Below are positions 33,801-61,011 of a stretch of 64,000 nt of DNA, one piece after another. The DNA is from Bugula neritina (Eukaryota > Animalia > Bryozoa): positions 17,390,633 to 17,454,632 of the forward strand of contig OZ037769.1 in assembly GCA_964035545.1 (NCBI GenBank), given 5' to 3'. The notes beneath the pieces are model-generated. The model made no database searches. It was given only the letters and a program-made list of their open reading frames with translations, and was not told the DNA's origin. Both the position numbers and the translations under genes were made by a program. Numbering within the stretch: the first letter of the stretch is position 1; every line of letters starts with the position of its first letter.

Positions 33801-36800
33801 CTCCGCAATGACCTCTAACTCTGTTTATTATATTCCAGCTGCACATGGATGCTTGTGAGGTGGTGGACATCATTGCCTTGACCTCTAGAACCGAACCATT
33901 CCCACTGAAAGGTGACAGATATGATGAGCTGAGAGCTTGTGTTGGAGATCATTGTGTGCAATCTTTAGCTAAACTCAAACTTTTCATGGTACGGAATAGA
34001 CTGTGATATCTCCCCTTTTTTTATACAGTGTAGAGTATACCATAGACTATAATATCTCCCCTTTGTTACAGTGTAGAGTATACTATAGACTGTGATATCT
34101 CCCCTTTGTTACAGTGTAGACAGTATACTATAGACTGTGATATCTCCCCTTTGTTACAGTGTAGAGTATACTGTAGACTGTGATATCTCCCCTTACAGGT
34201 GGGTTGTGGTGCGATAGGCTGTGAGATGATGAAGCTCTACGCCCTCCTTGGTGTAGGAACTGAGGGAAAACTCACCATCACAGACAACGACTTGATAGAG
34301 AAGTCTAACCTCAACAGACAGTTTCTCTTCAGACCTCACCATGTGCAGGTGTAGTAGCAGTTCTACCAACCTCACCACGTGCAGGTGTAGTAGCAGTTCT
34401 ATCAACCTCACCACGTGCAGGTGTAGTAGCAGTTCTACCAACCTCACCACGTGCAGGTGTAGTAGCAGTTCTACCAACCTCACCATTTGCAGGTGTAGTA
34501 GCAGTTCTACCAACCTCACCATGTGCAAGTGTAGTAGCAGTTCTACCAACCTCACCATGTGCAGGTGTAGTAGCAGTTCTACCAACCTCACCATGTGCAG
34601 GTGTAGTAGCAGTTCTACCAACCTCACCATGTGCAGGTGTAGTAGCAGCTCTACCAACCTCACCACGTGCAGGTGTAGTAGCAGCTCTACCAGACCCCTC
34701 TAGTATGTATACTATGTACTAGTGCAACATAACGTACAGTCATATCTGTGAATATTCTAGAAATCAAAGAGTGAGACTGCTGCCGTATCGTCACGAGAAA
34801 TGAACCCTCACCTCAAGATTGATGTCCAGCAGTTCAAAGGTCATTATCACCTCTCTACACTCTCAACCTTCATACAATATACACTATATATACTTACAGT
34901 ATATGTACTTACAGTGTATATACTTACACTGTATGTACTTACAGTATATGTACTTACACTGTATGTACTTACAGTATATGTACTTACACTATACATACTT
35001 TCACTGTATGTACTTACAGTATATATACTTACACTGTATGTACTTACACTGTGTATATTTACACTGTATGTACTTACACTATACGTACTTTCACTGTATG
35101 TACTTACAGTATATATACTTACACTGTATGTACTTACACTGTGTATATTTACACTGTATGTACTTACACTGTATGTATGTGTGTTGCAGTGTTTGAAGGC
35201 ACGGAGTACACGGTACACACAGACCAGTTCTTCACCGAGCAGGATCTCATTGTCAATGCTCTCGACAACGTGGAGACCAGAATCTACATGGACCAGAGGT
35301 GTGTGGACACCGGCAGACCTCTGCTGGAGAGCGGCACCACCGGGGCCAAAGGTCATACGCAGGTCATCGTACCTCACATCACCGAGTCTTATGGTAGTCA
35401 GGTGAGCTCTTCCACTCCCGCATGTCACGTGACTTCCTGTGAGACTCAACTGGCTGGTGTTTTAGCGAGTCCAACTTTACGTTTCTTGTGTTGCAGAGAG
35501 ACCCGACAGATGAAGACGTTCCGTTCTGCTCGCTGAAGTCATTTCCTGCTAAACTGGATCACTGTATCATATGGGCTAGAAACAAAGTGAGGGGCGTCTA
35601 CTACCCACCCTTACCGTGCTCTTTAGACTAATAGACTGTACTAACTCCTGTGTGATAGTTTCATCTCACTGTGTGATATTCTCTTGCAGTTCGAAAGTGC
35701 TTACTGTGAAAAGCCAAGAATCTTCAACAAGTTCTGGACTGATAACGGGTCACCTGATCGCGTGAAGGATGTATGTCAGCCAATAATATCCTTTGTTACA
35801 ATTCATTCCAACTATATTGTCCAATCAGCATCTTTCTTAATTTACCCAGCATTTATTCTCACTGAATCAGCCAATCATAATTGTGATTACTTGGTTACCT
35901 GCAGAGACTGTTGAATGGAGATATTCCCAAGTATTCCATGACTATGGCGAGACAACTCCGACAGAGGCCTGTGACGTGGGATGATTGTATCACAACCGCT
36001 CGGCTAAAGTTTGAGAAATATTTCTGTCACAAAGTAAGTAATTCTGTCACGGAGTAGATATAAGTAGACAGATAGATAGACAGACAGACATATAGACAGA
36101 CAGATATATAGATAATGTAGATATACTGCTCAACTTGTACTTCCTGTTCTATTCTACTTTAGGCAGAGGCACTGATACATGCATATCCACTGGACCATGT
36201 CAGAGATGATGGCAGTAAGTATTCTACCTGTTGCTATGGTTACTGTGTTGCTATGGTTACTCTGTTGCTATGGTTACTCTGTTGCTATGATTACTCTGTT
36301 GCTATGATTACTCTGTTGATATGGTTACTGTGTTGCTATGGTTACTCTGTTGCTATGGTTACTCTGTTGCTATGATTACTGTGTTGCTATGGTTACTCTG
36401 TTGCTATGGTTACTCTGTTGCTATGATTACTCTGTTGATATGGTTACTGTGTTGCTATGGTTACTCTGTTGCTATGGTTACTGTGTTGCTATGGTTACTC
36501 TGTTGCTATGGTTACTCTGTTGCTATGGTTACTGTGTAATTGTAGATCTGTTTTGGCAACTGCCCAGAAGACCTCCTCACCCCATCCAGTTTGACTCCAG
36601 CCTTCCTCAGTGAGTTGTTTAGTGTATACTACATACTACATACTATACTATGTACTATATGCATTATATTATATTATATTATATTATATTATATTATATT
36701 GTATTGTATTATATTGTATTATATTATATTATATTTTGTCATATTATATTATATCATATTATATTATATTATATGGTATACACCGATGTTTCAGTCACAT

Positions 36801-39800
36801 GGAGTTCATAACTAGTGCTGCCAGACTATTTGCTGACACTATGGCTGTTCCGCAGACAGATATTAGACTGGACTCTGAATATATTCTCCAAGTATTGAGT
36901 ACCGTCACCGTACCGGATTTCAGTCCTAAGTCTAAGGTCGGTTGAGTTTGGTTTATGGGCTATACATCATGTAATTAGGAGTTGTCTGACCTTATTGTTA
37001 AATTATTCAGTGTAGGGTACATATCCTCAGTGTAGGGTACATATCCTCAGTGTAGGGTACATATCCTCAGTGTAGGGTACATATCCTCAGTGTAGGGTAC
37101 ATATCCTCAGTGTAGGGTACATATCCTCAGTGTAGGGTACACATCCTCAGTGTAGGGTACACATCCTCAGTGTAGGGTACATATCCTCAGTGTAGAGTAC
37201 ATATCCTCTTGTAGAAAATAGTGGTGGATGACAGTGAGGCAGCGCCGGCTGACGTGGAGGACATGGAAGCTGATGAGAAAGAGATCCTGGACGTGCTGGA
37301 CGTGGTTCATAGGAGACACAACTCCAACAAGTGTGAGTCATAGTATATAGTTCCAGGGGTGTAGCCGGAAGGGGGTGTAGACAGCAACTCTCCCTATCTC
37401 TGCACTCAGCTAAGCTCATCACAAAATCTTTACTTCAAAATATTTGTATATAATATGTATTGAATGTTTCTCTAGATGTTTCGTAGTTGTCTTCTCATTT
37501 CTCCAGGATTATTGTTGCATGAAGTTATGAAAAAGCAGCAGTTGGTGGGAAACGGGAGGACAACTGCTTACACTCTGTGTTTATTGAGATATTGTCATGT
37601 TGTAGATTTTAGAGACATGATTTCCCAGGAGTTTGAGAAAGATGACGACTCCAACGGTCACATTGACTACATCGTAGCCACTGCTGTGAGTTTACCTACA
37701 TGGCCTTTAAATTACCTGCTAGTAAGGGAGCTGGGCTAGTTGACTGGAGGGCTAATTAACTGCTGGGCTAGTTGGCTGCTGGGCTAGTTGACTGGAGGGC
37801 TAGTTGGCTGCTGGGCTAGTTGACTGGAGGGCTAGTTGACTGGAGGGCTAGTTGACTGGAGGGCTAGTTGACTGCTGGGCTAGTTGACTGGAGGGCTAGT
37901 TGACTGGAGGGCTAGTCGACTGGAGGGCTAGTTTACTGGAGGGCTAGTTTACTGGAGGGCTAGTTTACTGGAGGACTAGTTGACTGCTGGGCTAGTTTAC
38001 TGGAGGGCTAGTTGACTGTTGGGCTAGTTTACTGGAGGGCTAGTTGACTGGTGGGCTAGTTTACTGGAGGGCTAGTTTACTGGAAGGCTAGTTGACTGTT
38101 GGGCTAGTTTACTGGAGGGCTAGTTGACTGCTGGGCTAGTTTACTGGAGGGCTAGTTGACTGCTGGGCTAGTTCACTGGAGGGCTAGTTGACTGCTGGGC
38201 TAGTTGACTGCTGGGCTAGTTTACTGGAGGGCTAGTTGACTGCTGGGCTAGTTTGCTGGAGGGCTAGTTGGCTGGAAAGCTAGTTGACTGTTAGATCAGT
38301 TACTGGAGGCGCCAGGGGGAGGGGGGTTTGGGGTTAAGACTTGTAGGTTAGTAGATTCAATGTAAGAGAGCTGGTAGTTGTAGTCCAGCCCTCAGCCATG
38401 TAATACAGCAGCTTAACGTTTAGATATACAGTTGGTAGAGTTAGGGCTATTCCACTCTAACATGTGCAGGGAAGTCTGTTTTCACCTCTTTGCAACGCGA
38501 GGAGAATATTTCCTTTACCCTCGAGTGGTCTGGGGATTTCCTCAGTCCACAGTTTCTGCTGATCGCGTAGTGATTGTGCAGTTTTATACATCAAATAGCT
38601 GTCACATTCCTTGCCAGTGCATTGACAGTGTTACACACACCTTGCAGGGACTGTCACTCATAATTAATGATAGATTATAAGCAACCATGTTGTATACAAT
38701 GTGGTGTTGCCATGGAAACGTTTGCAGATCACTCACAATTTAATAAGTGCTTCATCATGATGTAGATGATTTATGGAGCAGGTCAATAATTGATGATATC
38801 TTCAAATATGTACCTTTGGCCTGTAGCCAGTGTTTCTGGGATACATTTCACTGCTCACTCAGTTAGCTGTTCATCAGACTCGTGTCTGGTAATGGGCCGG
38901 GTTACCGTGACCGTGCATATTTAATTCACTGCATTTCCTGTCCTTTTTCTGCGTACATATATCCAGTTGAAGAATTTCTAATACTTGTTGAATAAAATGC
39001 AAATCCAATGTATGTCATTCTTGTGATATTTTTACTAGTTAGTAATATAATGTACTAAGTAGTAATATAATATACTAACTAATAGTAATATAATATACTA
39101 GCTAGTAATATAATATACTAACTAATAATATAATATACTAACTAGTAATATAATATACTAACTAGTAGTATAATATACTAACTAGTAATGTAATGTACTA
39201 ACTAGTAGTAATATAATATACTAACTAGTAATATAATGTACTAACTAGTAATATAATATACTAACTAGTAGTAATATAATATGACATGCTGTACTATAGA
39301 ATCTGAGAGCTGAGATGTATGGAATAGCCACTAGTGACAGATACAGTATTAAGAGAGTTGCCGGGAAGATAATTCCAGCTATAGCTACGACCACTGCTAC
39401 TGTGGCCGGTTTGGTGAGTCCACAGTCTCTACTCTCAGTACTACTCTACTCTCAGTACTACTCTACTCTCAGTACTACTCTACTCTCAGTACTACTCTAC
39501 TCTCAGTACTACTCTACTCACAGTACTACTCTACTCACAGTACTACTCTACTCACAGTACTACTCTACTCACAGTACTACTCTACTCTACTCTCAGTACT
39601 ACTCTACTCTCAGTACTACTCTGCTCTACTCTCAGTTGAAGTTAGCGTTAGGGAAGTGTTTAGTCTGAGAATGTGTCTGCTGCAGGTAGCAATTGAACTC
39701 TTCAAACTAATCAGAAAATCGTCTCTAGAAGATTATAAAAACTGCTTCTTGAACCTGGCTTTACCTGCCGTGGTGTTATCAGAGCCTGGAGCTGCTAAAG

Positions 39801-40863
39801 TTACTCAAATTAGGTGAGTGGGTAGGGAATGAGACTAAGTGGGTAGTGAGTAGTGAGTGAGTCTGAGTGAGTAGTGAGTGAGTCTGAGTGGGTAGTGAGT
39901 AGTGAGTGAGTCTGAGTGAGTAGAGAGTGAGTCTGAGTGGGTAGTGAGTAGTGAGTAGAGAGTGAGACTGAGTGGGTAGTGAGTAATGAGTGAATCTCTA
40001 AACAATTGGTTGAATTTTGTTTACATTTCTGGAAACTTACTGGCTTTTCACAATTCAAGTTTCTTTCTTTGAGCATTTATTTCCAGCTAACTTGTGTTGC
40101 GTAGCTCCTACTGTAGTATTATATATATATATGACAGGGACGGTCTCTCATTCACCCTATGGGATAAACTGCGTGTTCAAGGGACTGAGTCTATGACCAT
40201 GAATGATTTCATTGCTAAGGTCAAGGTGAGGTCACATAACAAAACACACTTAGCTAGGCTGTTAGATTATATAATACCGCATTGGGCCTCCCATATTATG
40301 TGGTGCTTGCTTTATCTTTATGGCGCCATTCAAATGATGCTGCAATATTATTGATTGTTGATTGACAGGAAGTGATGCAATTGGAAGTGGACATGGTGCT
40401 TCAAGGTTCTAGAATCATCTATTCGGCTATCTTGCCCACACATCGGAAAAAGATCAAAGAAAAGTAAGTGTAGTAGTGCAGTGTTACTAAGGTAAGTGTA
40501 GTAGTGTTACTAAGGTAAGTGTAGTAGTGCAGTGTTACTAAGGTAAGTGTAGTAGTATAGTGTTACTAAGGTAAGTGTAGTAGTGCAGTGTTACTAAGGT
40601 AAGTGTGGTAGTGCAGTGTTACTAAGGTAAGTGTAGTAGTTCAGTGTTACTAAGGTAAGTGAAGTAGTGCAGTGTTACTAAGGTAAGTGTATAAGTAGGG
40701 TTTTGTCACTCAGTAATTCAATTTACAAAATTTTAGAATGAGCTCGTTGGTGAGGATTCAGGGTGTGAAACCTTACATTGACTTGACTGTCTGCTTTGGT
40801 GGCCTGTCAGATGAAGTGTCAATGGATGTGCCACCTGTCAGATACCTGCTACCACCTGTCTAG
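27826..40863 (+). CDS. UBA6: Ubiquitin-like modifier-activating enzyme 6 (E1), about 29 exons
   Basis: IDDSLYS|[14 protein letters not shown] (UBA6-type), GFGGLGVEI|[41 protein letters not shown], catalytic [16 protein letters not shown] (35497-35586), [29 protein letters not shown] ending [11 protein letters not shown]. Confidence 0.92.
27880..28125 (+). repeat. 20-bp intronic minisatellite (AGTACTTACTCTATGTACTC)
   Basis: Directly visible in UBA6 coding intron 1. Confidence 0.9.
28691..29682 (+). repeat. CAGTATAAGGTATT(CT)n array, about 40 units, beginning inside the exon at a UBA6 donor
   Basis: The first unit spans ...CAGTATAAG|GTATTC (donor at 28702). Confidence 0.95.
29905..30095 (+). 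repeat. 41-bp tandem repeat duplicating a UBA6 acceptor (TACTCAG|GTGATATCT), 5 copies
   Basis: AGs end at 29916, 29957, 29998, 30039, 30080; only the last opens the coding frame VISGDVKG. Confidence 0.9.
30210..30480 (+). repeat. 11-bp tandem repeat (CTCTGTAGTTA)
   Basis: Directly visible; fills the intron. Confidence 0.9.
31928..33687 (+). repeat. CTGCTGTATCA(A/G)(CT)n compound minisatellite, about 1.75 kb, intronic
   Basis: Directly visible; explains three stop-free overlapping ORFs. Confidence 0.95.
33997..34198 (+). repeat. About 45-bp repeat duplicating the acceptor region (GATATCTCCCCTTTGTTACAG)
   Basis: 4-5 copies; the last ends CCCCTTACAG|GTGGGTTGTGGT (VGCG exon). Confidence 0.85.
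34334..34692 (+). repeat. 36-bp repeat duplicating exon end plus donor (CCTCACCATGTGCAG|GTGTAGTAGCAGTTCTACCAA), about 10 copies
   Basis: The first unit encodes PHHVQ of UBA6. Confidence 0.95.
34880..35180 (+). repeat. 15-bp tandem repeat (TACTTACACTGTATG)
   Basis: Directly visible. Confidence 0.9.
36228..36536 (+). repeat. 17-bp tandem repeat (CTGTTGCTATGGTTACT)
   Basis: Directly visible. Confidence 0.9.
37008..37214 (+). repeat. 20-bp tandem repeat (CAGTGTAGGGTACATATCCT) ending at an acceptor
   Basis: The last unit ends CCTCTTGTAG|AAAATAGTG. Confidence 0.9.
37733..38292 (+). repeat. 16-bp tandem repeat (GGGCTAGTTGACTGGA)
   Basis: Directly visible. Confidence 0.9.
39040..39992 (+). repeat. 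Three separate intronic arrays: 20-bp TAATATAATATACTAACTAG (39040-39282), 17-bp TCTACTCTCAGTACTAC (39425-39635), GTGAGT-rich (39813-39992)
   Basis: Directly visible in consecutive UBA6 introns; the third starts at the donor GTGAGT. Confidence 0.85.
40462..40692 (+). repeat. 28-bp repeat duplicating a donor (AAGGTAAGTGTAGTAGTGCAGTGTTACT), about 8 copies
   Basis: Begins at the real donor AA|GTAAGT (40464). Confidence 0.9.
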
Positions 40864-41839: not shown

Positions 41840-44800
41840 CTAGAGGTTGATGACCCAGGCTATTGAAGCCAGCAGTGCGGCAGCAACACAATTCCAACAT
41901 GGCCGAGTAGTGTAGGCAAAGTCAAAGACTACCGGCTGTCTCCTCAGATTATTGCTCTCTACAGTCGTTACCTCTTCATCAACATCTCCCTCTCCTCCCT
42001 CTTCTTCTTCTTCCTGTGTAAAGCATATCTTCTTCTCAGATCTGACGGGCGTAGTGCTGTGTTGGTTGAACATGCCGTTTGCCGCAAACCCATTTCCTTT
42101 TGCGAGCATCAAGTAGCGACATCCGTCAACTGAAATGTCGTCAGAGGCGGTATCATCTGTCTTACGAGTGATAACAGCCTCGGCCACGCCCTCATTCCAA
42201 CTCACCTGAATATCCTCATCTCCTCCCGCATCCCTCGCCGGTCTGCTGTACGCAGTGGCATACCTGCAGCACAACAAATCAGCTCCTTACGTCATAAATA
42301 TTCACACGTCTGTAGATTACTAACCTGAGGTTATTGTAAACTACAAATATTTACTATACTTAATGCAGGTGAATGTTTACATTAAACAGTATTTCTTACG
42401 TAAATGATTGGTAATAACTTCACCTATCAGATGGTACAAGGTCGCCCATCGCGCTGACCCCTACGTGAAGGACGTCAGTGTCCATCATGGCGATGTTATC
42501 CGAGATGCCGAGGGCCATCCACTCTCCTGATGTCAGCGGCGCACTCAGATTGAACACGACGGCTTTGTCACTCGGCAGGAACTTCCAGCTCACAGAAATC
42601 TTGTCTCCCTCAAACAGGTTCTTTGGTTTCTGTTCTGGAACTGTCAAACCAATCCAGAAATATCAAAGGGTGACAAGAAAAGTTGGCTATCGGGAGAAAG
42701 GTGTCTCAAACTAGACAACTATACGCCATGCATACAAAATTAATCTACTTGGGCTGGGCAAAATTTCATTTGCTGAAAACTAAACATAATGAAGCCCAAC
42801 CTATGCATATAAATTGGTAAAACTTCATACAATATTAGTTCTAAAATTTAATTTTGTTTGTCTCACCATCTAAGAAGTTGATACTGGCAGATCCCCTTTG
42901 ACCTCTATGTCCGTGATACATAAGGACATCCTTTCTATAGAAGAAGATGTCACTGACTGTACAGAGCTCCAGACCTGTTGGAGGATTGTGGTTGTAGTTG
43001 AGATGTTCCTGGCCATGTGCCCAGATGACGGTCATCACGGAGTCGGTGATAGAGTGGTCAAATGTCTCGGTAGCTGAAATCCAAAGAAGTTTTAATATTT
43101 TATAATTCAGAAGATGCATCTTGTAGCTTAGTTCTAATATATTATTTTCAATCTAGCTTTATAAAGTGCTTGCTCACAGTGAAATATGATACACCCTCTC
43201 AAATCAGAGAGATTTATGAAAGCTTTTGGATAATTCTCAAACAGTCCCCTCTGCAAACCGTTGCTAACTCACCACTGTGACATGCTTGATTTGTATCTAA
43301 AACTTGTTAAAACTGGCATATGTACGAGAAGGCCTAGCGCCATTAATAGATTTTGTAAAACTATTATCAAATATTTACCTTCCAGTTTTTTCCTGAAGAG
43401 GATTGTAGTCTCTCCGTTTACTTCTTCTCCTATGGCAGCAGTTAGACTGTTCTCTGCACCATAATATGTGTCAGCTTTTGGGGTACTCCTGTCTCGAGAG
43501 AAGGCATCATAAATACGAGACCTTTGACCTCTGGCAGCCATGATCACCATGTCAGTGCAATCCATTGGGTCTGAAAGTAAGTGCTTTAATAATTGGTGAA
43601 CTTGTTATGTACTATGGTTAAGGCCTAAATAATTTAAATTCAATCAAAATATGGGAGAGTAATCTTGAAATAACTTTTTTAATTCAAGATGGTAACTGTT
43701 CAATAAACACAAAGTTCAAAGCTCCCTGCAGATTTCTCAGCATAAAACGCCAACTTGCATTCTGAATAAGTACTGCACAGCTAGTATGGATTATGTACAA
43801 TAATAACTTCAGTTTCAAACTCACGGCCAACTCTGCCTGTAGGTACTCCAGGCTCTGCGGTTGATCCAGGTTCTGCAGTTGATACAGGTTCTGCAGTTGA
43901 TCCCGGTTCTGCAGTTGATATCGGCCCTGCAGTTGATCCAGGCTCTGCAGTTGATCCCGGTTCTGCAGTTGATCCAGGTTCTGCAGTTGATCCCGGTTCT
44001 GCAGTTGATCCCGGTTCTGCAGTTGATATCGGCTCTGCAGTTGATCCCGGTTCTGCAGTTGATATTGGCTCTGCAGTTGATCCCGGCTCTGCAGTTGATA
44101 TCGGCTCTGCAGTTGATCCAGGTTCTGCAGTTGATCCCGGTTCTGCAGTTGATCCCGGTTCTGCAGTTGATATCGGCTCTGCAGTTGATCCCGGCTCTGC
44201 AGTTGATCCCGGCTCTGCAGTTGATCCCGGTTCTGCAGTTGATCCCGGTTCTGCAGTTGATATCGGCTCTGCAGTTGATCCCGGTTCTGCAGTTGATATT
44301 GGCTCTGCAGTTGATCCCGGCTCTGCAGTTGATATCGGCTCTGCAGTTGATCCAGGTTCTGCAGTTGATCCCGGTTCTGCAGTTGATCCCGGTTCTGCAG
44401 TTGATATCGGCTCTGCAGTTGATCCCGGCTCTGCAGTTGATCCCGGTTCTGCAGTTGATCCCGGTTCTGCAGTTGATCCCGGCTCTACAGTTGATCCCGA
44501 TTCTGCAGTTGATCCCGATTCTGCAGTTGATCCCGGTTCTGCAGTTGATCCCGGCTCTGCAGTTGATCCCGGCTCTGCAGTGGATCCTGGTTCAGGTGTG
44601 ACATCTGGGCCTGGCTTACTTCCTGTCTCCATTTTGCATTTATATTGGGTCAGGGACTCATTCAAATCCTGAGCTGTAAATACAGAAACTGGCTCCAGTT
44701 AGCAACTTATTCAGACTAAAGACTGATTCACAACCCCGAAAATGAATTGACATCTTATTGGTAACAAACAAAACATAACTTGAGAAGTTGATGTTAAAAG

Positions 44801-47800
44801 TAGCAAAAAGAGATAGCAGAAAATGTAGTCTAAAACCAATGAACATGAGTCTTGGCAGGTGATGCAGTGACTGTCAACATATCTGCAGTTGGGCAACTTA
44901 CAACGAATGTACTCCAGACTTGAGTTTATCCAAATGCCAGCTTCTCTCTTCTTTAAGCGGGAAACCATTTTTCCATCATCTGGATAAGAAGTTACCTCGT
45001 CATCTTGATTGCTTCCATCATCCTCGCCACTTTCCGCTTCTGGAACAACCTCTGACTTGATTGTAGCTACAGATCATATAATAGACTTGGTTAGACAAAA
45101 CCTGTGTTGCTCAATGGCTGCAGGAAAATCTGCTTACAGTTTAGTCATTCTGATAATCAAAGACATGCCACAGAGACGAGACAGTACTCGTAGAGCATCT
45201 TAGTTACTCTTTGTAGTTTGTATATTCAGCATTATTTTCATTATATTATATATATTATATTATGTTTACATTATATGTTTTATAAACTGTAGAGTGTTTG
45301 AGAAGTTATAAAAACTGTAAATGTATGACTTTCACTGAATGAGTTTCTAGATTACCACTATTTGTCTTGTTATCAGATTAAACTCAACTGCATACGTATT
45401 CTCTCACCTTCCTTATCAATATGTCTGCAGTTAATGGATTCGGTAGGTTTCCATCCAATACCAACCCAAGTTTCTGTTTTCGCTTTAACAACTATCTCAA
45501 TCTCATCACCAATAACTCTGTGATGCAGAGCATATGTATCAGCCAACACCCGCTGAGTGTAGAGGGAAAGATCTAATTCAGCCAATGAGCTCACAGAAGA
45601 CATCTGTAACAACCAATGAAAATACAGTTTATTATATATATAATTATAGGCAAATAGACATTATCCCAGTAAAAGCGTATCCAAGAAGCTATTCTTTCAG
45701 CTTCGATTTTTTAGCAAGAGAACCACACTTGCTTACCTTTCCACACTTTTCACCGAAGTAACCTGCAGCACAGTAGCACTGCTTTCTCGGACTAGACACG
45801 GCGTGTGTATCAAAACATTCTCCTCCATTTAGACAGTCTGAGTCCACTTCACACTCATCTGAAACCCAGAATATGACAGCATGAGTCACTGTGAGCTAAA
45901 CGTAGCGGGGGAGGGGGGAGGAGGGGCGGAGTAAATCAGTTAGAGTGAGTTAGTTTAAAAAGTAAACCAGTTTATAGAGTTGGTTGAGTAAGTTAATTTG
46001 CATGTAGAGTGAAACAAAATAACGCAAGTTTAGGTTGCATTAACTTATGAAAAGTTGCAACTTTAGTCTTTTGAGTCATTTTTGAGATGTCAGCCTAAAC
46101 TGGTAAAACAAAATAAGCAGTAACTTTATATTGAATTCATCTTCAATATTCTGTTGCGTGTAGCTATAACTCTGATTTACTGTATCCAGAGTTGTGGGCC
46201 AACTGTGTCTGTTCAGCATTACACCAACTTAGCACGAAATTTTGCTGACACACTTAATTACACAGCCTTTTATGTCACCTCTAGCAATAAATTTATTTAT
46301 CAAAGTTGTCTTTGTTAAATACTCTATGCATAAACGAAAAACACAAGTTTACCCACCCCAATATTGACATCTGTCTCCGTAGTAGAACTTGTCACACTGA
46401 CATCTTCCATTCTGATAGGTTCCTTTGTTAGAGCAGAACTGAGAGGGGCTAGTAATGACCCTCACATCAGCACATGTCCAGAAGATGTAGTTTGGTCCCC
46501 ACTCTAAGGCCTGGCGTACCAACCTGAGGGTGCAGTTCTCACAGGTAAAGTTAGCTGGTATCAGGACAGTAGCAGACGTGGCTCTGTAACAGAGGAGTCA
46601 TTATATAGAATACCAAACTACTTGTACAGTTATGGAAGTCGTCTAGCATAGAAAGTATACCAGTTACATCAGTCATCTACTATCCAATCAGATTACTTGA
46701 AACAAACAATCTAAAACATATTAGGTTATTGGTTAAACTTGATGAAAAGCAGTACTTGAACATCATGCCAAGAATCTTGTTACTAAGTTGATAGACAATG
46801 AATTACACAATCATCATAATTGATTTGCCAAGTGCTACAACAGTGTTAAATATAACTACTTGTTGAATACCCTAGCAAGGTAAAGCATAAAATAGAATGT
46901 GGTACGTATGAGTTATAGTATTCAACACATAGTAGCTGTAGTGGGTGTATTTCCTCTCCTTTAGTGTAGCCAGTGGAAAGTCACACACACTGAGCTCTAT
47001 TGTCTATATTCAAAGGTGTGTATTGAATCCTAATTGATTGATATTTGCTGCGTCATGCTCACTACAACTCAGCTCAAACTTGTTTATTCCCTGTAAAGTT
47101 CTGACTCGAAGTTTATATAGTATTTGTTGTTATTTTATATTATAAGAAAAAGAGAGAAAACAATTTGAAGTTTTTAAGAAATATCAGTAAAGCAAATCAA
47201 AGTATCAGCTGTTCTGATAACTCTACTATCTGTTGATAGAGTTATTTATGTGTATAAGCAAAGCTTGTCATCATTACAAACATAGATATTCTTCTTTGTT
47301 ATTAAAATGTTTGAATTAAGTGCTGGCTGCATTTAACACTTAGCAGTACAATGCATGATTAGTACAGTAGTTAGAGTCTTACACAGTACTATGTTGATCA
47401 CAACTAATACTAAATATTAATGTGAATGAAAATACTTTTATTGGTTTAAACCTGAAACAAATGCTGATTCTGTTAATGTCCCATCTACACTTACTTTGTG
47501 TCATCTACACTTACATTATTTCATACACACTTACGTCGCGTCGTCTGCGCCAGTGAACTCTGACCCGTCAGCTGGTAGGATTGACATAGGATTCTCATCC
47601 TTCTCGTCCAGCAGCTCCACTCTGTATCCACCCTAGAATATGATGGACTAGAGTGTTAGCAGCTAGCAACTAGCAGTCTAAGGTAGCCTAGGTACCATGG
47701 TAATAACAGCTCACATATAACGAGTGGGTATAGGAAGCACCCTACTTACTCTGTGAGGATAACCCAGGTGCCAGGTTACAGTCAAGTTGTATCCAGCCCT

Positions 47801-48248
47801 CAGCTCTGAAAGAGGTTCTCCTGAAGATAATAATTGAAGATATTCATAAGTTTATGGGCGGAGTTAAGTTTAAACTTTGAACTTTCAAGTCTACTTATAG
47901 TAGCTAAGCTGTGTGTTGCAGCAGCTAAGAACGACATGCGACAGAATAAACACATGTATAATGAAATAACACTGTTTGAGCATAGAGCAGTCTGTAGATG
48001 ATAGCTAAGGTACTATAATTGAATATTTCATAAAGGAAGTGGATCAGGGATAATGCTCCACTACGTGTACTTCTAGAGCTAAGGCTATGTGACTCACCTT
48101 TAGGTTGACCTCCACAAGGACCTGGGGTCCTGCCGTTATCCTGGAAGTCATAGTCGACTCTACGAGGAAGCGGATAGGTGAGAGACACGTGGGACCAGCT
48201 ACTTCCTAGCTGAAGGGAGAAGACAACAAGGAGGGGCAGTAGACTCAT
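41840..48248 (-). CDS. Secreted/GPI-type protein, paralogue 1: signal peptide, His1 LPMO-like domain, 2 EGF, DOMON (split by GSTAEP repeats), DOMON, hydrophobic tail (nahoda-like); about 12 exons
   Basis: Exons about 48248-48098, 47820-47750, 47632-47535, 46584-46359, 45858-45737, 45603-45408, 45067-44902, 44673-43825, 43570-43379, 43072-42867, 42641-42424, 42264-41840 join in frame. EGF CSNKG..CQC..YYGDRC and CLNGGEC..CYC..YFGEKC; DOMON WVGIGW, HPMDCTDMV, WMALGISD..MDTDV. Confidence 0.85.
43850..44592 (-). repeat. Coding 18-bp repeat, (G/I)STAEP x about 41
   Basis: In-frame within an exon of paralogue 1. Confidence 0.92.
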
Positions 48249-48396
48249 CCTCTCGCATGCAGTGTGTTGGAACTGAGGCTAGAAAGTTGGAATAACTGCT
48301 ATATTGTTCTGAAGAAAGAGAGTAAAAATGGTTTTGCATAATTATTTATGAAATGATAACAAGAAATTAAAACATAGGATTGTTTCATCCACATAA

Positions 48397-48967
48397 TAAG
48401 TGTAGTAATATAAGCTGTAAGTGTAGTAATATAAACTGTAAGTATAGTAATATAAGCTGTAAGTGTATTAATATAAGCTGTAAGTGTAGTAATATAAGCT
48501 GTAAGTGTAGTAATATAAGCTGTAAGTATAGTAATATAAGCTGTAAGTGTAGTAACATAAGCTGTAAGTGTAGTAATATAAGCTGTAAGTGTAGTAATAT
48601 AAACTGTAAGTGTAGTAATATAAGCTGTAAGTGTAGTAATATAAGCTGTAAGTATAGTAATATAAGCTGTAAGTGTAGTAATATAAGCTGTAAGTGTAGT
48701 AATATAAGCTGTAAGTGTAGTAATATAAGCTGTAAGTGTAGTAATATAAACTGTAAGTATAGTAATATAAGCTGTAAGTGTATTAATATAAGCTGTAAGT
48801 GTAGTAATATAAGCTGTAAGTGTAGTAATATAAGCTGTAAGTATAGTAATATAAGCTGTAAGTGTAGTAATATAGGCTGTAAGTGTAGTAATATAAGCTG
48901 TAAGTGTAGTAATATAAGCTGTAAGTGTAGTAATATAAGCTGTAAGTGTAGTAATATAAGCTGCAAG
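48397..48967. repeat. 21-bp minisatellite (TAAGTGTAGTAATATAAGCTG), probably in the 5' UTR intron of paralogue 1
   Basis: Directly visible; lies between an acceptor at ~48280 and a candidate donor at ~49020 on the minus strand. Confidence 0.9.
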
Positions 48968-50133
48968 TCTCATAATATACTTTTCCTATGTTACTGAAGT
49001 AAGTAAACACGCTGACTTACTTTACAGGGTGCGTAAGTTACTCCAACTGTGCGCAGGTTACCTGTACATATAGTATAAGACTACACCTTTACCTGTAGCA
49101 GCGGAGTGACTTAGCAAATTTTTGTGTCGCACATTACAATAGCCGCAGCATAAAAGACCATTATGGATTGGCAGATATCAATGGGAATTCATTTGTTGAA
49201 AATCAATGACAGAGAAGCTGTGAATAGTGAGAGCTTTTGTTGTTGTCTTCTATATATTATATTATATAATTATCTACATAGAAAGAGAGTCTATATATAG
49301 TAGGCTACCAGTTGTTATATATAGAGTACCAGTTGTTTATGATACCAACCTACTATTGTAGGAGTATTTGAGTAGAAAGATATTGTGTTTATATTATATA
49401 TTTCAAAGTTATAGTTGATTTGAGTTCTCATGCCCTGGAAATGGCATAGTTTTGAGACATGTTATAAATTATTAATACTTCTTAGACTATTGTAAACACA
49501 AACATTAACTTAGGTATCAAATGTTGAAGTGTAGCTACTAATGCGCTAGTGGGTGTGTAGTATATGACTGGAGCAATGAATTGGGTTTAACGTATTGTAC
49601 TGCAGTCATCGCATATGTTGTATCAGTATAGGCCTCTTTAAATACTTCTATCGTAAATAAATATTTTTTATATAGCAGACAAATAAAGATACTTTTTTGT
49701 AATTCTTTATTAATAATAATAAATTAACTTTTGAATAAAACAAAACCAGTTGGGAAGTGGATAAGCAAGAAAGAATAAAAACAATAAATACAGAACATAA
49801 AGTAATAGCAAACAGTTCCGGGATTCAATGAATTTTGCCATGTTTGCCCATCATTAGTGAAAAAATAGCTAGTAATAATAATTATATTGCACAGGCTCAT
49901 AGTTTAGTTAGTGGCATATGACATTTTAGCAATATGATTAATCAAAAATTCTATATTCAAATATTATTTTTTCAAAATATATTTTGAGTTGAGTTGCAAA
50001 CCCTGAATAGCACTTGACGATTGCTTCAGCAACGCACAAACTGCAGAGATTTCTGGAACTTGAGAGATGACTGGATGTAAATATAAGAAAATAGAGAGAC
50101 TTAGTATATTGCAATGTATAGATGTTTGTTAGA

Positions 50134-53100
50134 CTAGAAAAGGAGTAAGATGAGACTAACAGCTGTAACCAAACTCGTACTGATATGCACAGATATGGCA
50201 GACGAGTTTTCTGGAACAAAACAGAGTTTTTGTGGTGAAATGACGGGCGTGTTGCCGTGTCTGGCGAAGGAACCTTGGCTGTAACCACTTCCTGTGGCGA
50301 TGATCAAGTGACGGCATTGGTCTACAGAAATATCATCTCCAGGCGTCTCATTGGCTGCTTCTACTGGTATTGTTATGACTGCTTTGACCACGCCCCCCGA
50401 CCATGAACTCACGATGTCCTCGTTGTTGGACGCATCGGCTGCTGGTGGGTCATATGATACGGCATATCTGAAATAAGGGAGATGGAAGTGAGTGACTAGT
50501 TATAGTGACTTATAGTAGCAGTTACTGATAATAGTTATTAAAAGGCAATGAGAGTTACTGTAACTGACCTATCAGAAGTTATTACTGTTCCGTCGTTCTC
50601 TATTCCGACATGTTTCACATCTGTATCCTCCATCTTTTTGTTATCAGAGATCCCCAGAGCTATCCAGTCTCCCTTATCAAGTTTACCATATAAGGTAAAG
50701 ATGACTGATTTGGAAACTGCATCATATTTCCACTCAACATATGTGTCATCATCTCGCCTGAACACATTTTCAGGCTGTCCACTCATATCTTCAAAGGGAT
50801 TAACGTTATAGCCATACATGTATATTGATTATTAAACAGTATACTTCATACAATTTGACATAGATTCATTATATATTGATACATATTATAAAACACATTA
50901 CTCTTAATGCTAATTTGCTTGAAGTTGTTCTCAAATAATATAAAATAACTAAGTTGAGCTTACAGAAATGGAGTCACTTAAAAGGCTTATGAGCAATTCA
51001 TACCATCTAAGAAGTTGATACTGGCAGATCCCCTTTGACCTCTATGTCCGTGATACATAAGGACATCCTTTCTATAGAAGAAGATGTCACTGACTGTACA
51101 GAGTTCCAGACCTGTCTGAGGATTGTGGTTGTAGTTGAGATGTTCCTGGCCATGTGCCCAGATGACGGTCATCACGGAGTCGGTGATGGAGTGGTCAAAT
51201 GTCTCGGTAGCTGGAGAGACAAGTTGTTATACTGTATTACAGAGAGACTTTTATGTAATCACTGATCAGTTGTATAACAAGGCTACCAACTGGCAGAGGT
51301 GTGAGTAACTTGCTAATGGAAGCAATAATCCTAACCTTTCTCAGGTCTTCTAGTAACACACTGTGTTTCAGGTCAGCTTCTATGAGGAACTCTCATGTCA
51401 ATGCACAGTATAATATACAGTATTACACATATCATAAGCTGTTATTCTATACCAACATCTCTGAAATATTTACCTTCCAGTTTTCTCCTAAAGAGAATTG
51501 TAGTCTCTCCGTTTACTTCTTCTCCTATGGCAGCAGTTAGACTGTTCTCTGCACCATAATATGTGTCAGCTTTTGGGGTACTTCTGTCTCGAGAGAAGGC
51601 ATCATAAATACGAGACCTTTGACCTCTGGCAGCCATAATCACCATGTCAGTGCAATCCATTGGGTCTGAAGAAATTGAAGTTATTTTGAGCTATCTGTTT
51701 GCAATACCAGCTAATACAGAAGTTTGAATCCCGATTAAAACAGCATCAGCAGAATTTTTGACTGCATATGACAAATCGTATTTCAAGCTGATGCATTAAA
51801 ATATGGTAGTGAATCTCAATGAGTAAGTACAGAGAACCTCCTTTCTACTATTTGAAAGTCTGTATAAGCTGTTGTAATCTTGGGGCCCTTTCAATAAGTT
51901 CATATTAATAAGTGTACAGAAGTTAAAGTATTCTTACGCCCAGCAGTGTTGCTTTCTCCTTCTGGCTCTGGCTCACTCTCGCCATGGCCTTCTGGCTCCC
52001 CCTCGCTGTGTCCTTCTGGTGTTGTTTCTGGTTCCGCTGTGCTATGACCTTCTGCTGTTGTTTCTGGTTCTGTGGTACCATGACCTTCTGGTGTAGCTTC
52101 TGCTTCTGGAACAGCTTTTCCACCGGATCCTGGACTGCATTGATAAGTTGCTAATGAACTGTCTAATCCTTGAGCTGCAATAAAAAAACGTAATATGAAT
52201 TTATTGCTATGACCATAATAATATGCATATGTAGAGCTTAGATTGTATCTGAGATAAGCTGGAGACTTTACTTTTCTACTTACAGATGAGGTACTCTTTG
52301 TTGCTGAGTATTTCAACAACACCTGAAGTGTTTGAAGAAGGCGGTAAAACAGTGCCCTCTGATGTTGGTTCTGACGCTGTGGACTCGGGGGTTGATTCTG
52401 CTTTTGGTGTTGTTTCTGATGTTGGCTTTGGCTCAGACTCAGCAGTACTCTCAGCTTCTGGAGTAGATTCAGACTCTGGTTTAGATTCAGACTCCGGCTT
52501 TGGGTCTGTCCCGATGGTGCGACAGTTTAACGGGCTGGTTGGTTTCCACCCCAAACCAATCCATGTGGTTGTTTTTGCCTTAACTACCATCTCTACTTCA
52601 CTCGCTATAACTTTGGTGTACAAGTCAAAGTTTTCTGACATAGTGTGCTTCCTGTGGTCACTTAGGTCAAGGTCTCCCAGAGTCTGAACAGTTGATACCT
52701 ACGGTCATATTGGTGCACACAATTACTTCCTTTTGTAGGTCAAAGTGCCAGCAGAATAGAGATTATCTTTAGGCTATCTCACATTACTATTTGCAAAATA
52801 ATTGCTGGTAGTTGTTTACAGATTACAGACTAGTTAGTGATTTAAAAAGAATATCTCACCAAGCTGCACTTTTCACCGAAGTAACCTGCAGCACAGTAAC
52901 ACTGTTTTCTTGGACTAGACACGGCGTGTGTATCAAAACATTCTCCTCCATTCAAACAGTCTGAGTCTACTTCACAGTCATCTACAACAGAACAACAGAG
53001 AACAATAAGTCATCACAAAAAGTTAGCATAAGTTCTTTCTTAAGTTATTTAGTTAGGTAAAAGCCTAGAGGAAAATGAGCATCTAATTGACATCAGAAAC

Positions 53101-56100
53101 AAACCCACCCCAATATTGACATCTGTCTCCGTAGTAGAACTTATCACACTGACATCTCCCATTCTGATAGGTTCCTTTGTTAGAGCAGAATTGAGAGGGG
53201 CTAGTAATGACCCTCACATCCGCACATGTCCAGAAGAGATAGTTTGGTCCCCACTCTAAGGCCTGGCGTACCAACCTGAGGGTGCAGTTCTCACACGTGA
53301 AGTTGGCTGGTATCAGGACGGTAGCAGACGTGGCTCTGTAACAGAAGAGTCATTATAAAGAATACCAAACTACTTGTACAGTCATCAGTGGAAGTGGCAT
53401 ATGATGTATATTGCTGAAGATACTACAAATTATCACATTGAAATGATGCGTGTGATCATATGACTTTGATAAGTTCTATATTTTCAGCTGGTACTGAAAG
53501 TTTGCTTCTATAGAACTCATATACAGAGTAAGTAGCTATGTGTTAGAACCTCATCTCATCTCTGCTGTAGACTGAACACCAGTATAATCAATAGAAACCG
53601 TAACTAAGCCACTACTAGAGAAAATGAACCTTTCTATTTTCAATAATGAGAATTATCTTCCCTTTAGTGTAATGGAGTAAAGTAGCAGCTTATTTGTATT
53701 AGCACCCAGTCACCTCATGACTACAGGCAGCGCTGACTTGCATAGTTCTAACAGAAAGAAATGAATTGCCTGTGCTGCATATTGCCTTCTGTGCTGCATA
53801 TTGCCTTCTCCCTTTGGCAAATTACGTGTGACCTGACTGACCACAAGACTGTGGGCAGCAGCTAGGGACCAAACCGAACAGACTCTGTGCTGCCTCACCG
53901 CTGCTGCCAACCATTGACTTGTCTCAACAGGAAATACGAACTGGGAACAGCATGAGGCACACAGCTGCTTGTCTCTACCATAGCTTCATTATACTCTCTG
54001 TTATATGGTAATTTATTCAGCGAGTCAAAACTGGATGAATTCCTCAAGGATTAAAGAGTTGAATGGCACGTTGCATTGTCTATTTTCTTAAAGATTACCA
54101 TAGCAAGACTCAGCTAGACTTAATGCTGAGCTACACACGCACACACACAGAACACACACAGCACACACACAGCGCACACAGCACACAGCACACAGCACAC
54201 AGCACACAGCACACACACGCACACAGCACACAGCACACAGAGCACACAGCACACAGCACACAGCACGCACACGCACACGCACACGCACACGCACACACAG
54301 CACACGCACATGCACACGCACACGCACACAGCACACAGCACACAGCACACAGCACACAGCACACAGAGCACACAGCACACAGCACACAGCACACAGCACA
54401 CAGCACACAGCACACAGCACACAGCACACAGCACACACACACACACACGCACGCACACACACGCACGCACGCACACACACACACACACACACACACAAAC
54501 TGCTGGGTCATAATCCTAACATTAGTGAATGAAAGCATCTTAATTGGTTATGACTTGCAAATTTTCCTCTTCACTTAATGTTGCAATAATGTTGCAATGT
54601 ATGCAATTTATGTTTAGTCTTAAATCTGATAATAAAAGATTAAAAGTAAGATATGAATATAAAATCTATTAGGCTATTTTCTCAGATGTAGATTATAATA
54701 TTTTGAGTTATAAACGTGCTAAAGTCTTATTATTGTAGCTTATGTGAAGATATTAACTTAACTGACAAAATAAAAGAGATTCCACCAACCAGATGAGTTT
54801 AAGCTGAAGTAATTAACAGAGAAGAAAAGTAAACAGAAAATAAGTTGAAGAGAATGTGAGGAAAAGCTTATTGACTGTGAAAATATAAATAGACAAGAAC
54901 AAACAGAATAGAAAAGAAATTATTGAGAAAATAATAGCAAAGTTTAGAATGTTGAGAAATAGATTAGTGAAATATAAAATAATACAGAATAAAAGTAAAA
55001 GTGGAACAAAAACATATAAGTGAAAGTAAAGCATTGACTTACGTCGTGTCATCAGCCCCTGAGAACTCAGTGGTGTTATCAGCTGGTAGTAGCTGCTTTA
55101 CTGGAGTATCAGTTTGGTCGAGAAGTTCTATTCTGTATCCACCCTGGAATATGTCAATAATTAGTATAATAACACAAATAAATAATATATTACGGTGTTT
55201 ACCATGCTAGATTTATATGAATTAAATTGAATAAGTAATTTATTATGGTGTTTACCATGCTAAATTTATATGAATTAAATTAAATATTATGATTTATTAC
55301 AACGTTAATATTTGGTTTTCAACTGGGTATATTGTGTAGAGTTCTATTAATCTGGTGTGGGACATACAACGTGTTGACTTCAACAAGCAAAGTAATTACT
55401 AAGCTAATGTATACTTTTAGAAGTTGTCTTCCCATGTTATTCTGAATAGTGCCACCACCAAAGTGAATGCTTACTATTGGAGTTAGCTGACCCCATGTGA
55501 CCTTGTGTGACCCCATGTGGCCTTAAAAATATGTGACATTAACCCCATGTGTTTTCTTATTATAAATTGTCACCTTGATGTCCACAATGACTCAGGATAA
55601 CTATCAAAAGATTCAGCCTATTTTGAACAGAGGACCAACTGAACTATATAATATGCCTACAGCCCATATGCTATGAGTTTAGAGTTTTCTCCATTATAGT
55701 GGAAAGTCGAAACAAATACTAGCCAACTTTGCTATTATAGGCAAGACGTTTCCACTTTGTATATAAATAGAAAATGTTGTTTTGCATCAGAAATACTTTT
55801 CAAACTTTTCAGGATGTGGAAATGTATTTTGACAAGATTCAATTTTCAGAAAGTGAATTTTTAGAAAACTGGCATACTTAAGAGAGCCAGAAATTTGACC
55901 TTCTAAAGCATTTTATTACAAAGTTGTGCCGAAGTTGAACAACAAATTAATAATGGGAAGTCATTGTCGTCGTGATGAATTGGTGAATACTGCAGGAGTG
56001 TAACACTGGAGCTAGTGTAACAGCCTCCTGTTTGCTATAGCATGCTACCTTATTCAATACCTCAAAATTATTGGAAAACTGACTGCAAAAGGAAGTGATT

Positions 56101-58863
56101 AATAAATAAAATACATTTTCAGTTGTCATTAGTTCTTATAAATAGCATTTAAATACCACAAAACAGGCTAAAGTAATTGTCATTGAGTTCTACAAACAAA
56201 TTTACACAGTATATCGATCCCACATTCATGTATATCTGCGTAGTTACTCTGTCTATTGCTAGATGTTAACAAACGTGAAGCCTAAAGTCACACAGCTGGA
56301 CAATGTCAACTATAGTTAGTTGGTACTTTATTCTCCTAATTCAGTAGAGGTTTGGGTGAATGATCTACTTCTCATTTAGTGTGGTTATTGGTACTTGCTA
56401 GGCCTGGGAAATTCCTACACAATGTACACTGTACAGTAAACTCTCTCTTTATTATCTTATAAAGTGAGAAACTTGTAATCAATGCGAACATAACAGCAGA
56501 ATAAAATAGACTGTGTCAAACATAGACTGTGTTACTGCCATAGCAACAGCTGGTTGTCATATAAACTTGTCACTTGTGCCAAGTGAAGCATAAATTACTT
56601 TCAAAACTTCCATCAATTTAGGCGGAGAAATCAAAGCAACGATGCAGGAGCTGCTGGAAGGTCTTTGAGAATATTTACTTTGATTTGTTTTAAGAGAAGA
56701 AAACTTCTTTCATCTTCTCAAACCCTTTGAATTGTTTCTCAATATGATTGTGTATCTGGTGTAGCTTACATGTTAATTACAAGTTATATCAAAGTTATGG
56801 CTATATGATAATTATTCTTGATAAGTTAAAGCAAGTGAGACAGACAGACTTAGTAGATGCTATAATAGCACACACAGAGAGCAGCTAGGGTAATGTAGTG
56901 CTAAGTATTATAATCCTTAATACAAGTAGAATACTTAGCATTCATTTGTTGATTATACAATATAGTCTTGACCTACTCTACAGAATCTCAAGGACACTTC
57001 TACTGTTCAGTATATACACCGGCAGCGTAGCCTCAGTATTCACAACTCAACACTGTAAGGGTGGCAGGGAATACCAGCCTTACTTTCTGCTAGGATAGCC
57101 CAAGTAACAAGTTACAATAGTAGAAGTATTACAGGTGTATATATTCTACTTGCTGCGTGAGGGTAGCCTGAGTACCATACTGCTAGCAGCTCACAAATAA
57201 CGGGTGGATATAGGAAGCACCCTACTTACTCTGTGAGGATAACCCAGGTGCCAGGTTACAGTCAAGTTGTATCCAGCCCTCAGCTCTGATAAAACCTCAG
57301 CTGAAAAAAAAACAAAATATTTGTTGATGAATTTTGAGGAAATTGTGTTCCACACAGCTCTAAAAATAAATAAATATTCCTTTGAAGGTGAAAACACCTC
57401 GGAAAGATTTTACCAGCTTGAAATAGAATATTTGACCTTTAACCTATGAATTTCTCCCCAGTGTGCTAATTTCTTGTTTTTGGAAATGAACAAAATACTA
57501 TAAATGATATTATAATGAGTTATTATTAAAATATTGTCAGTAGAGATTAACAATTGAATAGCATATCTGAAAATACTCTCAGTGTTGATATGGAATGTAG
57601 AACTAAGTTAATCCCCTCGGATCAGCTAAGTAAGTACATAGGATGAGCTAGCTAAGTAAGTACATAGGATGAGCTAGCTAAGTAAGTACATAGGATGAGC
57701 TAGCTAAGTAAGTGTGTACGTCATTACAATCAGTGAGTATATAAGTAAGGTGTTATTGTGGTTCTATGTAGTTCAGTAGTCTACCTCTAGGAGGTGATAT
57801 CTTGTAGCAATTACTGGCTCTCTCCTGACCTAACCACCTTATTAGTGATGCAATACACCACCACCCAGACCACGCCCTCTCTTCCCAGACCACACCCCTT
57901 TTCCAGACCGTGCCCTCTTTACTTTCAAGCAACATACATGCATATAAACCATTGGGATATGTTTTCTTTAGCTTCAGAGAGCAAAGTTGTTGGATGTTTC
58001 CTTATCAAAGAATATTTAATTATTGCATCTATAAGTGGATTACCAAATAAAACACCAAAGTGTTATAAAACTGTGAGAGAAATTTTGCTCATATATTAAA
58101 CTGTTTGGTAGAATGAGTGGAATGAATTCCAACAGCTTTAGAATTGAATGCAGTTTATGAGTGTAAGCATAATAACAGTTGATGGGTAGTAGCTGCAGTA
58201 TGCAAGGGTCTATTATAGTTTGTCAGTATTACAGGTGCAGGTATATTATTATGGTAATTTGAGGGACTTTGCATGTATAATATAGAGATGAGTCATTAAC
58301 CAGGCATAATCTAAGTGGTAATATAATGTAGTATAACACCATGTATCGTAGTAGTGTGTAGTATAACAATATATACTGTAGTAGTGTGTAGTATACTGTA
58401 GTAGTGTGTAGTATAACACTATATACTGTAGTAGTATGTAGTATAACACTATATACTGTAGTAGTGTGTAGTATACTGTAGTAGTGTGTAGTATACTGTA
58501 GTAGTGTGTAGTATAACACTATATACTGTAGTAGTGTGTAGTATAACACTATACACTGTAGTATAGTGTGTATAATGTATTAGGGGATTAAGACACGTGG
58601 AAGTGGAACTACCACAATATTTTATTCTGACACTAGCAACAACAATCAACTAAACTCTTTTAAACTAGATAATAATACCATCACACAAGTGATGTCATGA
58701 ACTTACCCTTAGGTTGACCTCCACAGGGTCCCGGGGTTCGCACGTTATCCAGGAAGTCGTAGTCGACTCTCCTCGCAATAGGGTAGGTCAAGGCCACGTG
58801 CGAATAGGAAGTGCCGATCTGCAGAGACGCAATGAGTAGAGTCACAAACATCTGGTCCTTCAT
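50134..58863 (-). CDS. Secreted/GPI-type protein, paralogue 2: same architecture (His1 LPMO-like, EGF x2, split DOMON, DOMON, GPI-like tail); about 11 exons
   Basis: Exons about 58863-58707, 57300-57230, 55143-55043, 53335-53110, 52981-52860, 52698-52283, 52174-51938, 51665-51474, 51209-51004, 50788-50569, 50467-50134. MKDQMFVTLLIASLQIGTSYS|HVALTYPIARR..., ending NSSAISVHISTSLVTAVSLILLLF*. Confidence 0.85.
54132..54497. repeat. (CA)n/(CACAGCA)n compound microsatellite
   Basis: Directly visible. Confidence 0.95.
58325..58572. repeat. Tandem repeat (TATACTGTAGTAGTGTGTAGTATAACAC variants)
   Basis: Directly visible. Confidence 0.85.
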
Positions 58864-60887: not shown

Positions 60888-61011
60888 CATAATATATACA
60901 CATCTTACACTACAATTAACACATGTATACACATCTTACACTACAGTTAACACTTGTATATACATCTTGCACTACAGTTAACACATGTATATACACATAT
61001 TACATTTCAGA

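Follow-up and report, generated by a model that had tools for sequence, protein, structure and literature searches.

A 64,000-nucleotide stretch of the genome of the bryozoan Bugula neritina (contig OZ037769.1, positions 17,390,633 to 17,454,632; hereafter the window, in whose numbering coordinates are given) carries two neighbouring minus-strand genes in tandem, A and B. Both are members of the Nahoda family and encode, in this order, a signal peptide, a domain beginning with a histidine (His1), two EGF-like repeats, a DOMON domain split by an insertion (DOMON1), a second DOMON domain (DOMON2) and a hydrophobic tail. Gene A (50134..58863) runs from an ATG at 58863 to a stop at 50134 and encodes 747 amino acids in 11 exons (58863-58707, 57300-57230, 55143-55043, 53335-53109, 52981-52860, 52698-52323, 52174-51938, 51665-51474, 51210-51004, 50788-50569 and 50467-50134), and gene B (41840..48248; ATG at 48248, stop at 41840) encodes 972 amino acids in 12 exons (48248-48098, 47820-47750, 47632-47535, 46583-46357, 45858-45737, 45603-45408, 45066-44902, 44673-43825, 43570-43379, 43073-42867, 42640-42424 and 42263-41840). 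Both reading frames are open, with GT-AG at every intron and zero internal stops. In contigs from four runs that a tool guessed to be RNA, gene B junctions 1-2, 4-5, 5-6, 6-7 and 7-8 are spliced and gene A-type sequence is joined across exons 1-6; word depth, a poor measure of expression, is much higher for A-type than for B-type contigs. With both genes open and spliced, pseudogene status was rejected. Gene structure and transcription, together with the family, fold and residue conservation described below, form the established part of this account; the window exons were searched one at a time, and the structures are those of database orthologues (the N-terminal domain from Owenia and the full-length protein from Glandiceps).

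The putative signal peptides, of 21 residues in gene A (58801..58863, with a hydrophobic core and Ser at positions -3 and -1) and 19 residues in gene B (48192..48248), end just before His1. Cleavage at this point is backed by a small residue at -1 in 30 of 30 orthologues and a small or aliphatic one at -3 in 29 of 30. The domain that follows is encoded by exons 1-4 in both genes, at 53208..58800 in gene A (His1 at 58800, His54 at 57235, Glu116 at 53256, Tyr121 at 53241, Phe123 at 53235) and at 46456..48191 in gene B (His1 at 48191, His54 at 47755, Glu115 at 46504, Tyr120 at 46489, Phe122 at 46483), the numbering of the latter being used below. In an alignment of orthologues whose rows were collected by similarity and include many insects, His1 is present in 33/33 sequences, directly after a signal-like segment, His54 in 43/44 and Phe122 in 42/44; residue 116 is aromatic in 42/44, and the structural cysteines are kept in nearly all rows. 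A chance motif was rejected on the strength of this conservation across phyla.

Modelled with AlphaFold2 (predicted local distance difference test score, pLDDT, 93), the Owenia domain has lytic polysaccharide monooxygenases (LPMOs) as its top Foldseek matches, and every one of the 21 best structural matches is an LPMO, an X325 protein or fusolin. A wide structural search ranked the LPMO TdAA15A first (Z 13.0, root mean square deviation 2.9, 130 aligned positions, residues 1-130 on 1-192), followed by AA16, AA10, AA11, AA13 and LaX325 (Z 10.7), whereas the closest predicted models are bacterial SCE4755-like clusters (template modelling score 0.76-0.77). A profile of the family also finds TdAA15A at the sequence level (E 7.5e-7); in this match His54 corresponds to His91 and Phe122 to Tyr184, both copper ligands of that enzyme (PMC5823890). 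This relationship is visible to the profile alone: a single orthologue used as sequence query retrieved no LPMO from the PDB, and exons 1-3 by themselves gave no Pfam or NCBIfam match. Because an LPMO fold and the conserved His1, His54 and Phe122 on the ligands of TdAA15A coincide, the domain very likely contains a histidine brace, copper binding itself being a prediction. A preliminary description of the locus, made from its sequence, had located a His right after the signal peptide of two paralogues, at positions 48191 and 58800, and had proposed an LPMO-like histidine-brace domain with His1 and His54; both coordinates are exact, and the fold, the register of His1, His54 and Phe, and the near-invariance of the two His residues across orthologues bear the proposal out.

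The surroundings of the predicted copper site are unusual. Ala89 of TdAA15A aligns with Tyr52 (Tyr in 38/44) and Glu182 with Tyr120 (Tyr in 39/44, replaced by Lys in both hemichordate orthologues), and the same register emerges from comparison with an AA15 gene of the B. neritina genome; a conventional AA15-like LPMO gene lies at C4:2370302-2374081. Residue 115, five positions before Tyr120, is acidic in 44/44, a spacing that we take to be that between Arg and Glu of the REF motif in ScAA10C numbering. The second sphere of Nahoda thus reads Glu-Tyr-Phe in the alignments and departs from the LPMO motifs compared. Trp116 corresponds to Tyr166 of AA15 in one alignment, an alternative register being possible in another, and an equivalence of Phe16 with AA15 Tyr24 found no support from hhalign.

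Although Nahoda shares with AA15 (TdAA15A, PDB 5msz) the fold (Z 13 over 130 residues), the His1/His91 pair, an aromatic axial residue and an animal distribution, it is shorter (130 versus 195 residues), has no beta-tongue and fewer cysteines, is tethered and fused to heme-type DOMONs, and carries Tyr for Ala89, Tyr for Glu182 and Phe for Tyr184. The residues characteristic of AA15, an Ala two positions before the second His and a Glu before the axial residue, are absent from Nahoda, and membership in AA15 was rejected since Tyr replaces both. The bacterial LPMO-like family SCE4755 (NF043005), itself uncharacterised, is closest in size and model shape; its profile scores orthologues at 25-52 bits (best 52.1, E down to 7e-14), below the cut-off of 75, and exon 4 of the window at about 20 bits. 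Among ten orthologues, Pfam LPMO_10 accepts one (25.1 versus 23 bits), places one below threshold and misses eight, and PF20238 (BIM1-like) reaches at best 26.6 and 22 bits, below its cut-off of 27. By these profile scores and alignments, the N-terminal domain is LPMO-like yet classifiable as none of AA15, SCE4755 and X325.

The acidic residue 115 could be a replacement for the lost carboxylate or, as Asp is in X325, a copper ligand. The latter possibility leads to a reading in which Nahoda captures or buffers copper in the manner of fungal X325/Bim1, with Glu115 occupying position four of the copper and with hemes that determine its redox state before it is passed on to a transporter or to the cupro-enzymes of the cuticle. 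X325 and Bim1 share with Nahoda a small LPMO-fold histidine-brace domain, and in the case of Bim1 a glycosylphosphatidylinositol (GPI) anchor; redox activity has not been convincingly shown for them, and the fourth ligand of X325 is Asp (PMC10952591). Besides the full conservation of an acid at position 115, the structural match to LaX325, the near-threshold BIM1-like score (26.6 bits versus 27) and the His-containing acidic repeats of gene A are in line with copper capture. We nevertheless consider it quite unlikely: X325 does no better in the structural ranking than AA15, AA16, AA10 and AA11, the axial Phe is retained, the His repeats are not conserved, and the up to eight DOMONs of a single chain are hard to account for by copper binding alone. 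X325 and Bim1 are fungal and devoid of heme domains, and Glu115 is only a candidate for the counterpart of their Asp ligand.

The two EGF-like repeats of gene B, encoded by the end of exon 4 and by exon 5 (45737..46445), match Pfam EGF models, and those of gene A (52860..53197) are 90-96% identical to gene B exons 4-5. DOMON1 occupies 51004..52698 in gene A (Met at 51660, His at 51052) and 42867..45603 in gene B (Met at 43565, His at 42915; Pfam DOMON positions 4-42 and 42-101) and is interrupted by an acidic Pro/Ser/Thr-rich insertion of 130-330 residues. In gene B the insertion (43825..45066) comprises an extra exon with a basic KKR site (45066-44902) and a coding unit of 18 bp that is repeated 41 times (43854-44593). 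In gene A it is rich in Glu, Pro, Ser and Thr, and four Glu-Gly-His repeats (51938-52174) form a possible metal-binding patch; conserved His-rich copper repeats were rejected, as these are present in gene A only and not in orthologues. Basic convertase-type sites are common in the insertion (most long orthologues have R-x-K/R-R and gene B has KKR, while gene A has no such site), and the chain may, judging from such motifs, be cut inside DOMON1. Annelid and mollusc orthologues apparently have whole additional DOMONs nested in this insertion. DOMON2 lies at 50210..50788 in gene A (Met at 50633, His at 50259) and at 42010..42640 in gene B (Met at 42488, His at 42061).

The candidate heme ligands Met and His are each invariant across orthologues, in 39/39 sequences for DOMON1 and 27/27 for DOMON2, as had been suspected for the two B. 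neritina proteins, and both Met residues fall on Pfam position 42. Among 66 long proteins with His1, whose rows are not independent, 60 keep both DOMON1 ligands, the other six being truncated or interrupted by long, divergent insertions. The Met of DOMON2 aligns with that of the cytochrome b domain of a pyrroloquinoline quinone (PQQ) dehydrogenase (6jt6; a weak sequence match, E 0.095) and with a Leu in the non-heme dopamine beta-hydroxylase (DBH), whereas the equivalence of its His to a heme ligand comes from position only. A Met/His pair sets heme DOMONs apart from sugar-binding ones and from DBH (PMC10691727), and we infer that each Nahoda DOMON binds heme b through it. In the full-length Glandiceps model (pLDDT 87, predicted template modelling score, pTM, 0.76), DOMON2 matches DBH (Z 14.4), the PQQ-dehydrogenase cytochrome b (Z 12.8) and the cytochrome of cellobiose dehydrogenase (CDH; Z 12.2). 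DOMON1, split and with extra loops, is structurally less certain than DOMON2 in the modelling, and its profile had no meaningful match in the PDB.

Both proteins end in a hydrophobic tail, at 50137..50205 in gene A (Kyte-Doolittle 2.29 over 15 residues, with one residue after) and at 41843..41900 in gene B (2.17 over the last 15 residues). A GPI-like anchor, as in the preliminary description, is a candidate reading of these tails; the pattern of omega site, spacer and hydrophobic end fits gene A and, less well, the less typical signal of gene B. A GPI-type tail is not family-wide, many orthologues apparently having a membrane segment with a long tail beyond it.

The assignment to Nahoda, also anticipated by that description, rests on exon-wise alignment to orthologues that included Saccoglossus Nahoda-like and not Drosophila nahoda itself; homology spans the N-terminal domain, both EGF repeats and the split DOMON1. 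Exon 4 retrieved 311 representatives, in the complete ones of which His directly follows a signal-like segment. Named members come from insects, crustaceans, chelicerates, a centipede, nematodes, a nematomorph, molluscs, an annelid, a nemertean and two hemichordates; at least six phyla of invertebrates have the gene. Among the named exon-4 matches there is no vertebrate, cnidarian or sponge, which is no proof of absence. A plasmid search gave no match. Relatives, including Drosophila nahoda and Saccoglossus Nahoda-like with their same N-terminal domain, EGF pair and split DOMON1, are labelled only as EGF/DOMON proteins or as uncharacterised. The B. neritina copies carry two DOMONs and end in a GPI-like tail; more DOMONs (up to eight per chain, as in an abalone protein), SEA domains or a membrane segment occur in many orthologues. 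At the other extreme, the shortest complete orthologue has 458 residues and consists of the histidine-brace domain, two EGF repeats, DOMON1 and an anchor. It is intronless, comes from marine metagenome contigs and would be a handy construct for biochemistry; a microbial source was rejected, since the gene-poor contigs suggest a eukaryote.

Nahoda might instead serve structure or adhesion, its LPMO-fold and DOMON modules being mere ligand-binding scaffolds. The EGF repeats, the mucin-like insertion and the SEA domains and basic cleavage sites of many orthologues are what such a protein might display. Yet exactly the copper and heme ligands are near-invariant across at least six phyla, and the Met is lost in the non-heme DOMON of DBH; we regard a purely structural role as very unlikely.

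We favour, with a probability of about 0.5, the reading that Nahoda is a tethered, heme-fed copper enzyme that oxidises the surface matrix; within this reading, metal and heme binding, the direction of electron flow and the substrate are drawn from models and conserved residues. Removal of the signal peptide would expose His1, which together with His54 would bind one copper above the buried Phe, and each DOMON would carry a heme b on Met and His. The hemes would receive single electrons from outside, from ascorbate or from a membrane cytochrome b561/CYBDOM reductase, and hand them to the copper within the same chain, much as fungal LPMOs receive electrons directly from AA8 cytochromes that contact them (PMC8981238). 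Cu(I) would then activate O2 or H2O2 for oxidation of a cell-surface matrix substrate, most likely a glycan (chitin, for instance) or a glycoprotein, and the DOMON array, stretching from the anchor to the N-terminal copper domain, would be both wire and spacer. Both folds are kept together in one tethered chain, and heme-to-copper delivery is the simplest reading.

The nearest precedents differ in what is joined to what. The AA8 domains of CDH and PQQ pyranose dehydrogenase share the DOMON fold and the Met/His pair and are known LPMO reductants, but they are fused to a dehydrogenase and meet the LPMO in trans, whereas the Nahoda DOMONs are fused to the copper domain without a dehydrogenase. 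Similarly, CYBDOM/FRRS1 and Knickkopf are animal cell-surface DOMON proteins, the DOMONs of CYBDOM keeping Met/His, but they lack a histidine-brace domain, and CYBDOM has a b561 membrane domain.

Several findings weigh against this tethered heme-fed enzyme. The chain contains no flavin, PQQ, b561 or dehydrogenase domain; it has the carriers and no primary electron source, unlike CDH, the heme domain of which is fed by a flavin domain. An outside donor is therefore needed, and the term self-reducing, applied to the system at the outset, was an overstatement in the strict sense. The pTM of 0.76 is compatible with a defined domain arrangement but could also come from one loosely placed module, and DOMON1, folded as part of the full-length protein, had CBM9 (Z 7.7) as its sole match. 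The N-terminal domain, at 130 residues, is shorter than solved LPMOs (142-235) and comes without a carbohydrate-binding module. Finally, catalytic LPMOs have Glu or Gln two positions before the axial aromatic residue, where Nahoda has Tyr in 39/44; in cellulose-active AA10 and AA9 this Glu or Gln tunes reactivity (PMC11137697). Tyr at this position and in place of the axial Ala may, from the alignment, crowd the copper site, and the altered second sphere weakens a plain glycan-cleaving reading.

The same residues give rise to another proposal, in which Nahoda is a heme-fed copper oxidase or peroxygenase with non-glycan targets, producing H2O2 or radicals that cross-link matrix proteins or phenolics, with Tyr52, Tyr120 and Trp116 as a radical or small-substrate site. 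The two conserved Tyr residues in place of AA15 Ala and Glu beside the copper and the small domain without a carbohydrate-binding module agree with it, LPMOs behave as oxidases in the absence of substrate (PMC10952591), and Knickkopf, another GPI-type DOMON protein, organises chitin and does not cut it (PMC11354708). With the Tyr positions known from alignment only and Tyr120 being Lys in both hemichordate orthologues, we hold this to be unlikely. A broader picture, doubtful as a whole and offered tentatively, is that of an unrecognised pan-invertebrate enzyme family with a natural single-chain brace and its own heme-b relay, fed by a plasma-membrane reductase, in which the Tyr/Tyr/Glu second sphere would enable non-classical chemistry, such as radical cross-linking or selective oxidation of the apical matrix, in place of the usual cleavage of glycans.

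The two genes are not the only Nahoda sequences of the genome. A third copy at C1:18940624-18946340 retains exons 1-2 and 7-11 and shows no trace, as assembled, of exons 3-6, that is, of the rest of the copper domain, the EGF repeats and the start of DOMON1; because of this absence and the mismatched phases of exons 2 and 7, it looks internally deleted. Identity between A and B is 90-98% in exons 2, 4 and 5 and the two DOMON1 ligand exons and 55-70% elsewhere, and in exons 1, 10 and 11 gene A is nearer to the C1 copy than to gene B, a mosaic that suggests exon-scale gene conversion between the neighbours. Elsewhere in the window, reading of open reading frames points to a receptor tyrosine kinase (436-2805), a biotin-protein ligase (9030-12051) with a reverse-transcriptase fragment of a long interspersed nuclear element inside it (9634-11235, minus strand), a vanin/biotinidase-like gene (13954-15261), two SMUG1-like genes (23618-26332), a UBA6-like gene (28131-40354) and the start of an usherin/laminin-like gene (60985-63533).

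Sequences of this kind have surfaced before. An early branch of the LPMO tree with DOMON/EGF and LPMO_10 sequences was left unexplained by Voshol 2019 (PMC6950343), a 2026 preprint lists DOMON among the domains of weak LPMO candidates (10.1101/2025.06.05.658061), some orthologue fragments bear the UniRef label 'chitin-binding type-4 domain', and databases name others LPMO_10 or BIM1-like. Searches by name found no functional paper on nahoda, and the literature on nahoda, SCE4755, LPMO plus DOMON and LPMO-cytochrome fusions, subscription journals being largely uncovered, yielded no paper that describes the brace, its changed second sphere or a relay of hemes. The preliminary description left open whether the histidine brace had been described; no account of the copper-plus-heme design emerged from these searches, and the link to LPMOs had already been drawn by Voshol 2019 and Pfam-derived labels. 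The altered second sphere, the insertion that splits DOMON1 and the extra exon of gene B go beyond the preliminary description. Nahoda is a known but unstudied family, an unclassified branch of the LPMO superfamily with a predicted heme relay.

The electron supply of animal LPMOs is an open question, for which the AA15 study could only suggest gut dehydrogenases (PMC5823890). If true, a conserved animal protein in which CDH-type cytochrome domains are joined to a histidine brace would carry the answer within its own chain and serve as a model of heme-to-copper transfer. The named Drosophila gene and the compact 458-residue orthologues make point mutants of His1, His54 and the heme Met/His directly testable. 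If catalytic, Nahoda would represent a new branch of the LPMO superfamily with an unusual second sphere; if not, it would be the heme-coupled equivalent of Bim1 in animals. In both cases the gene, present in at least six phyla of invertebrates, needs a new annotation.

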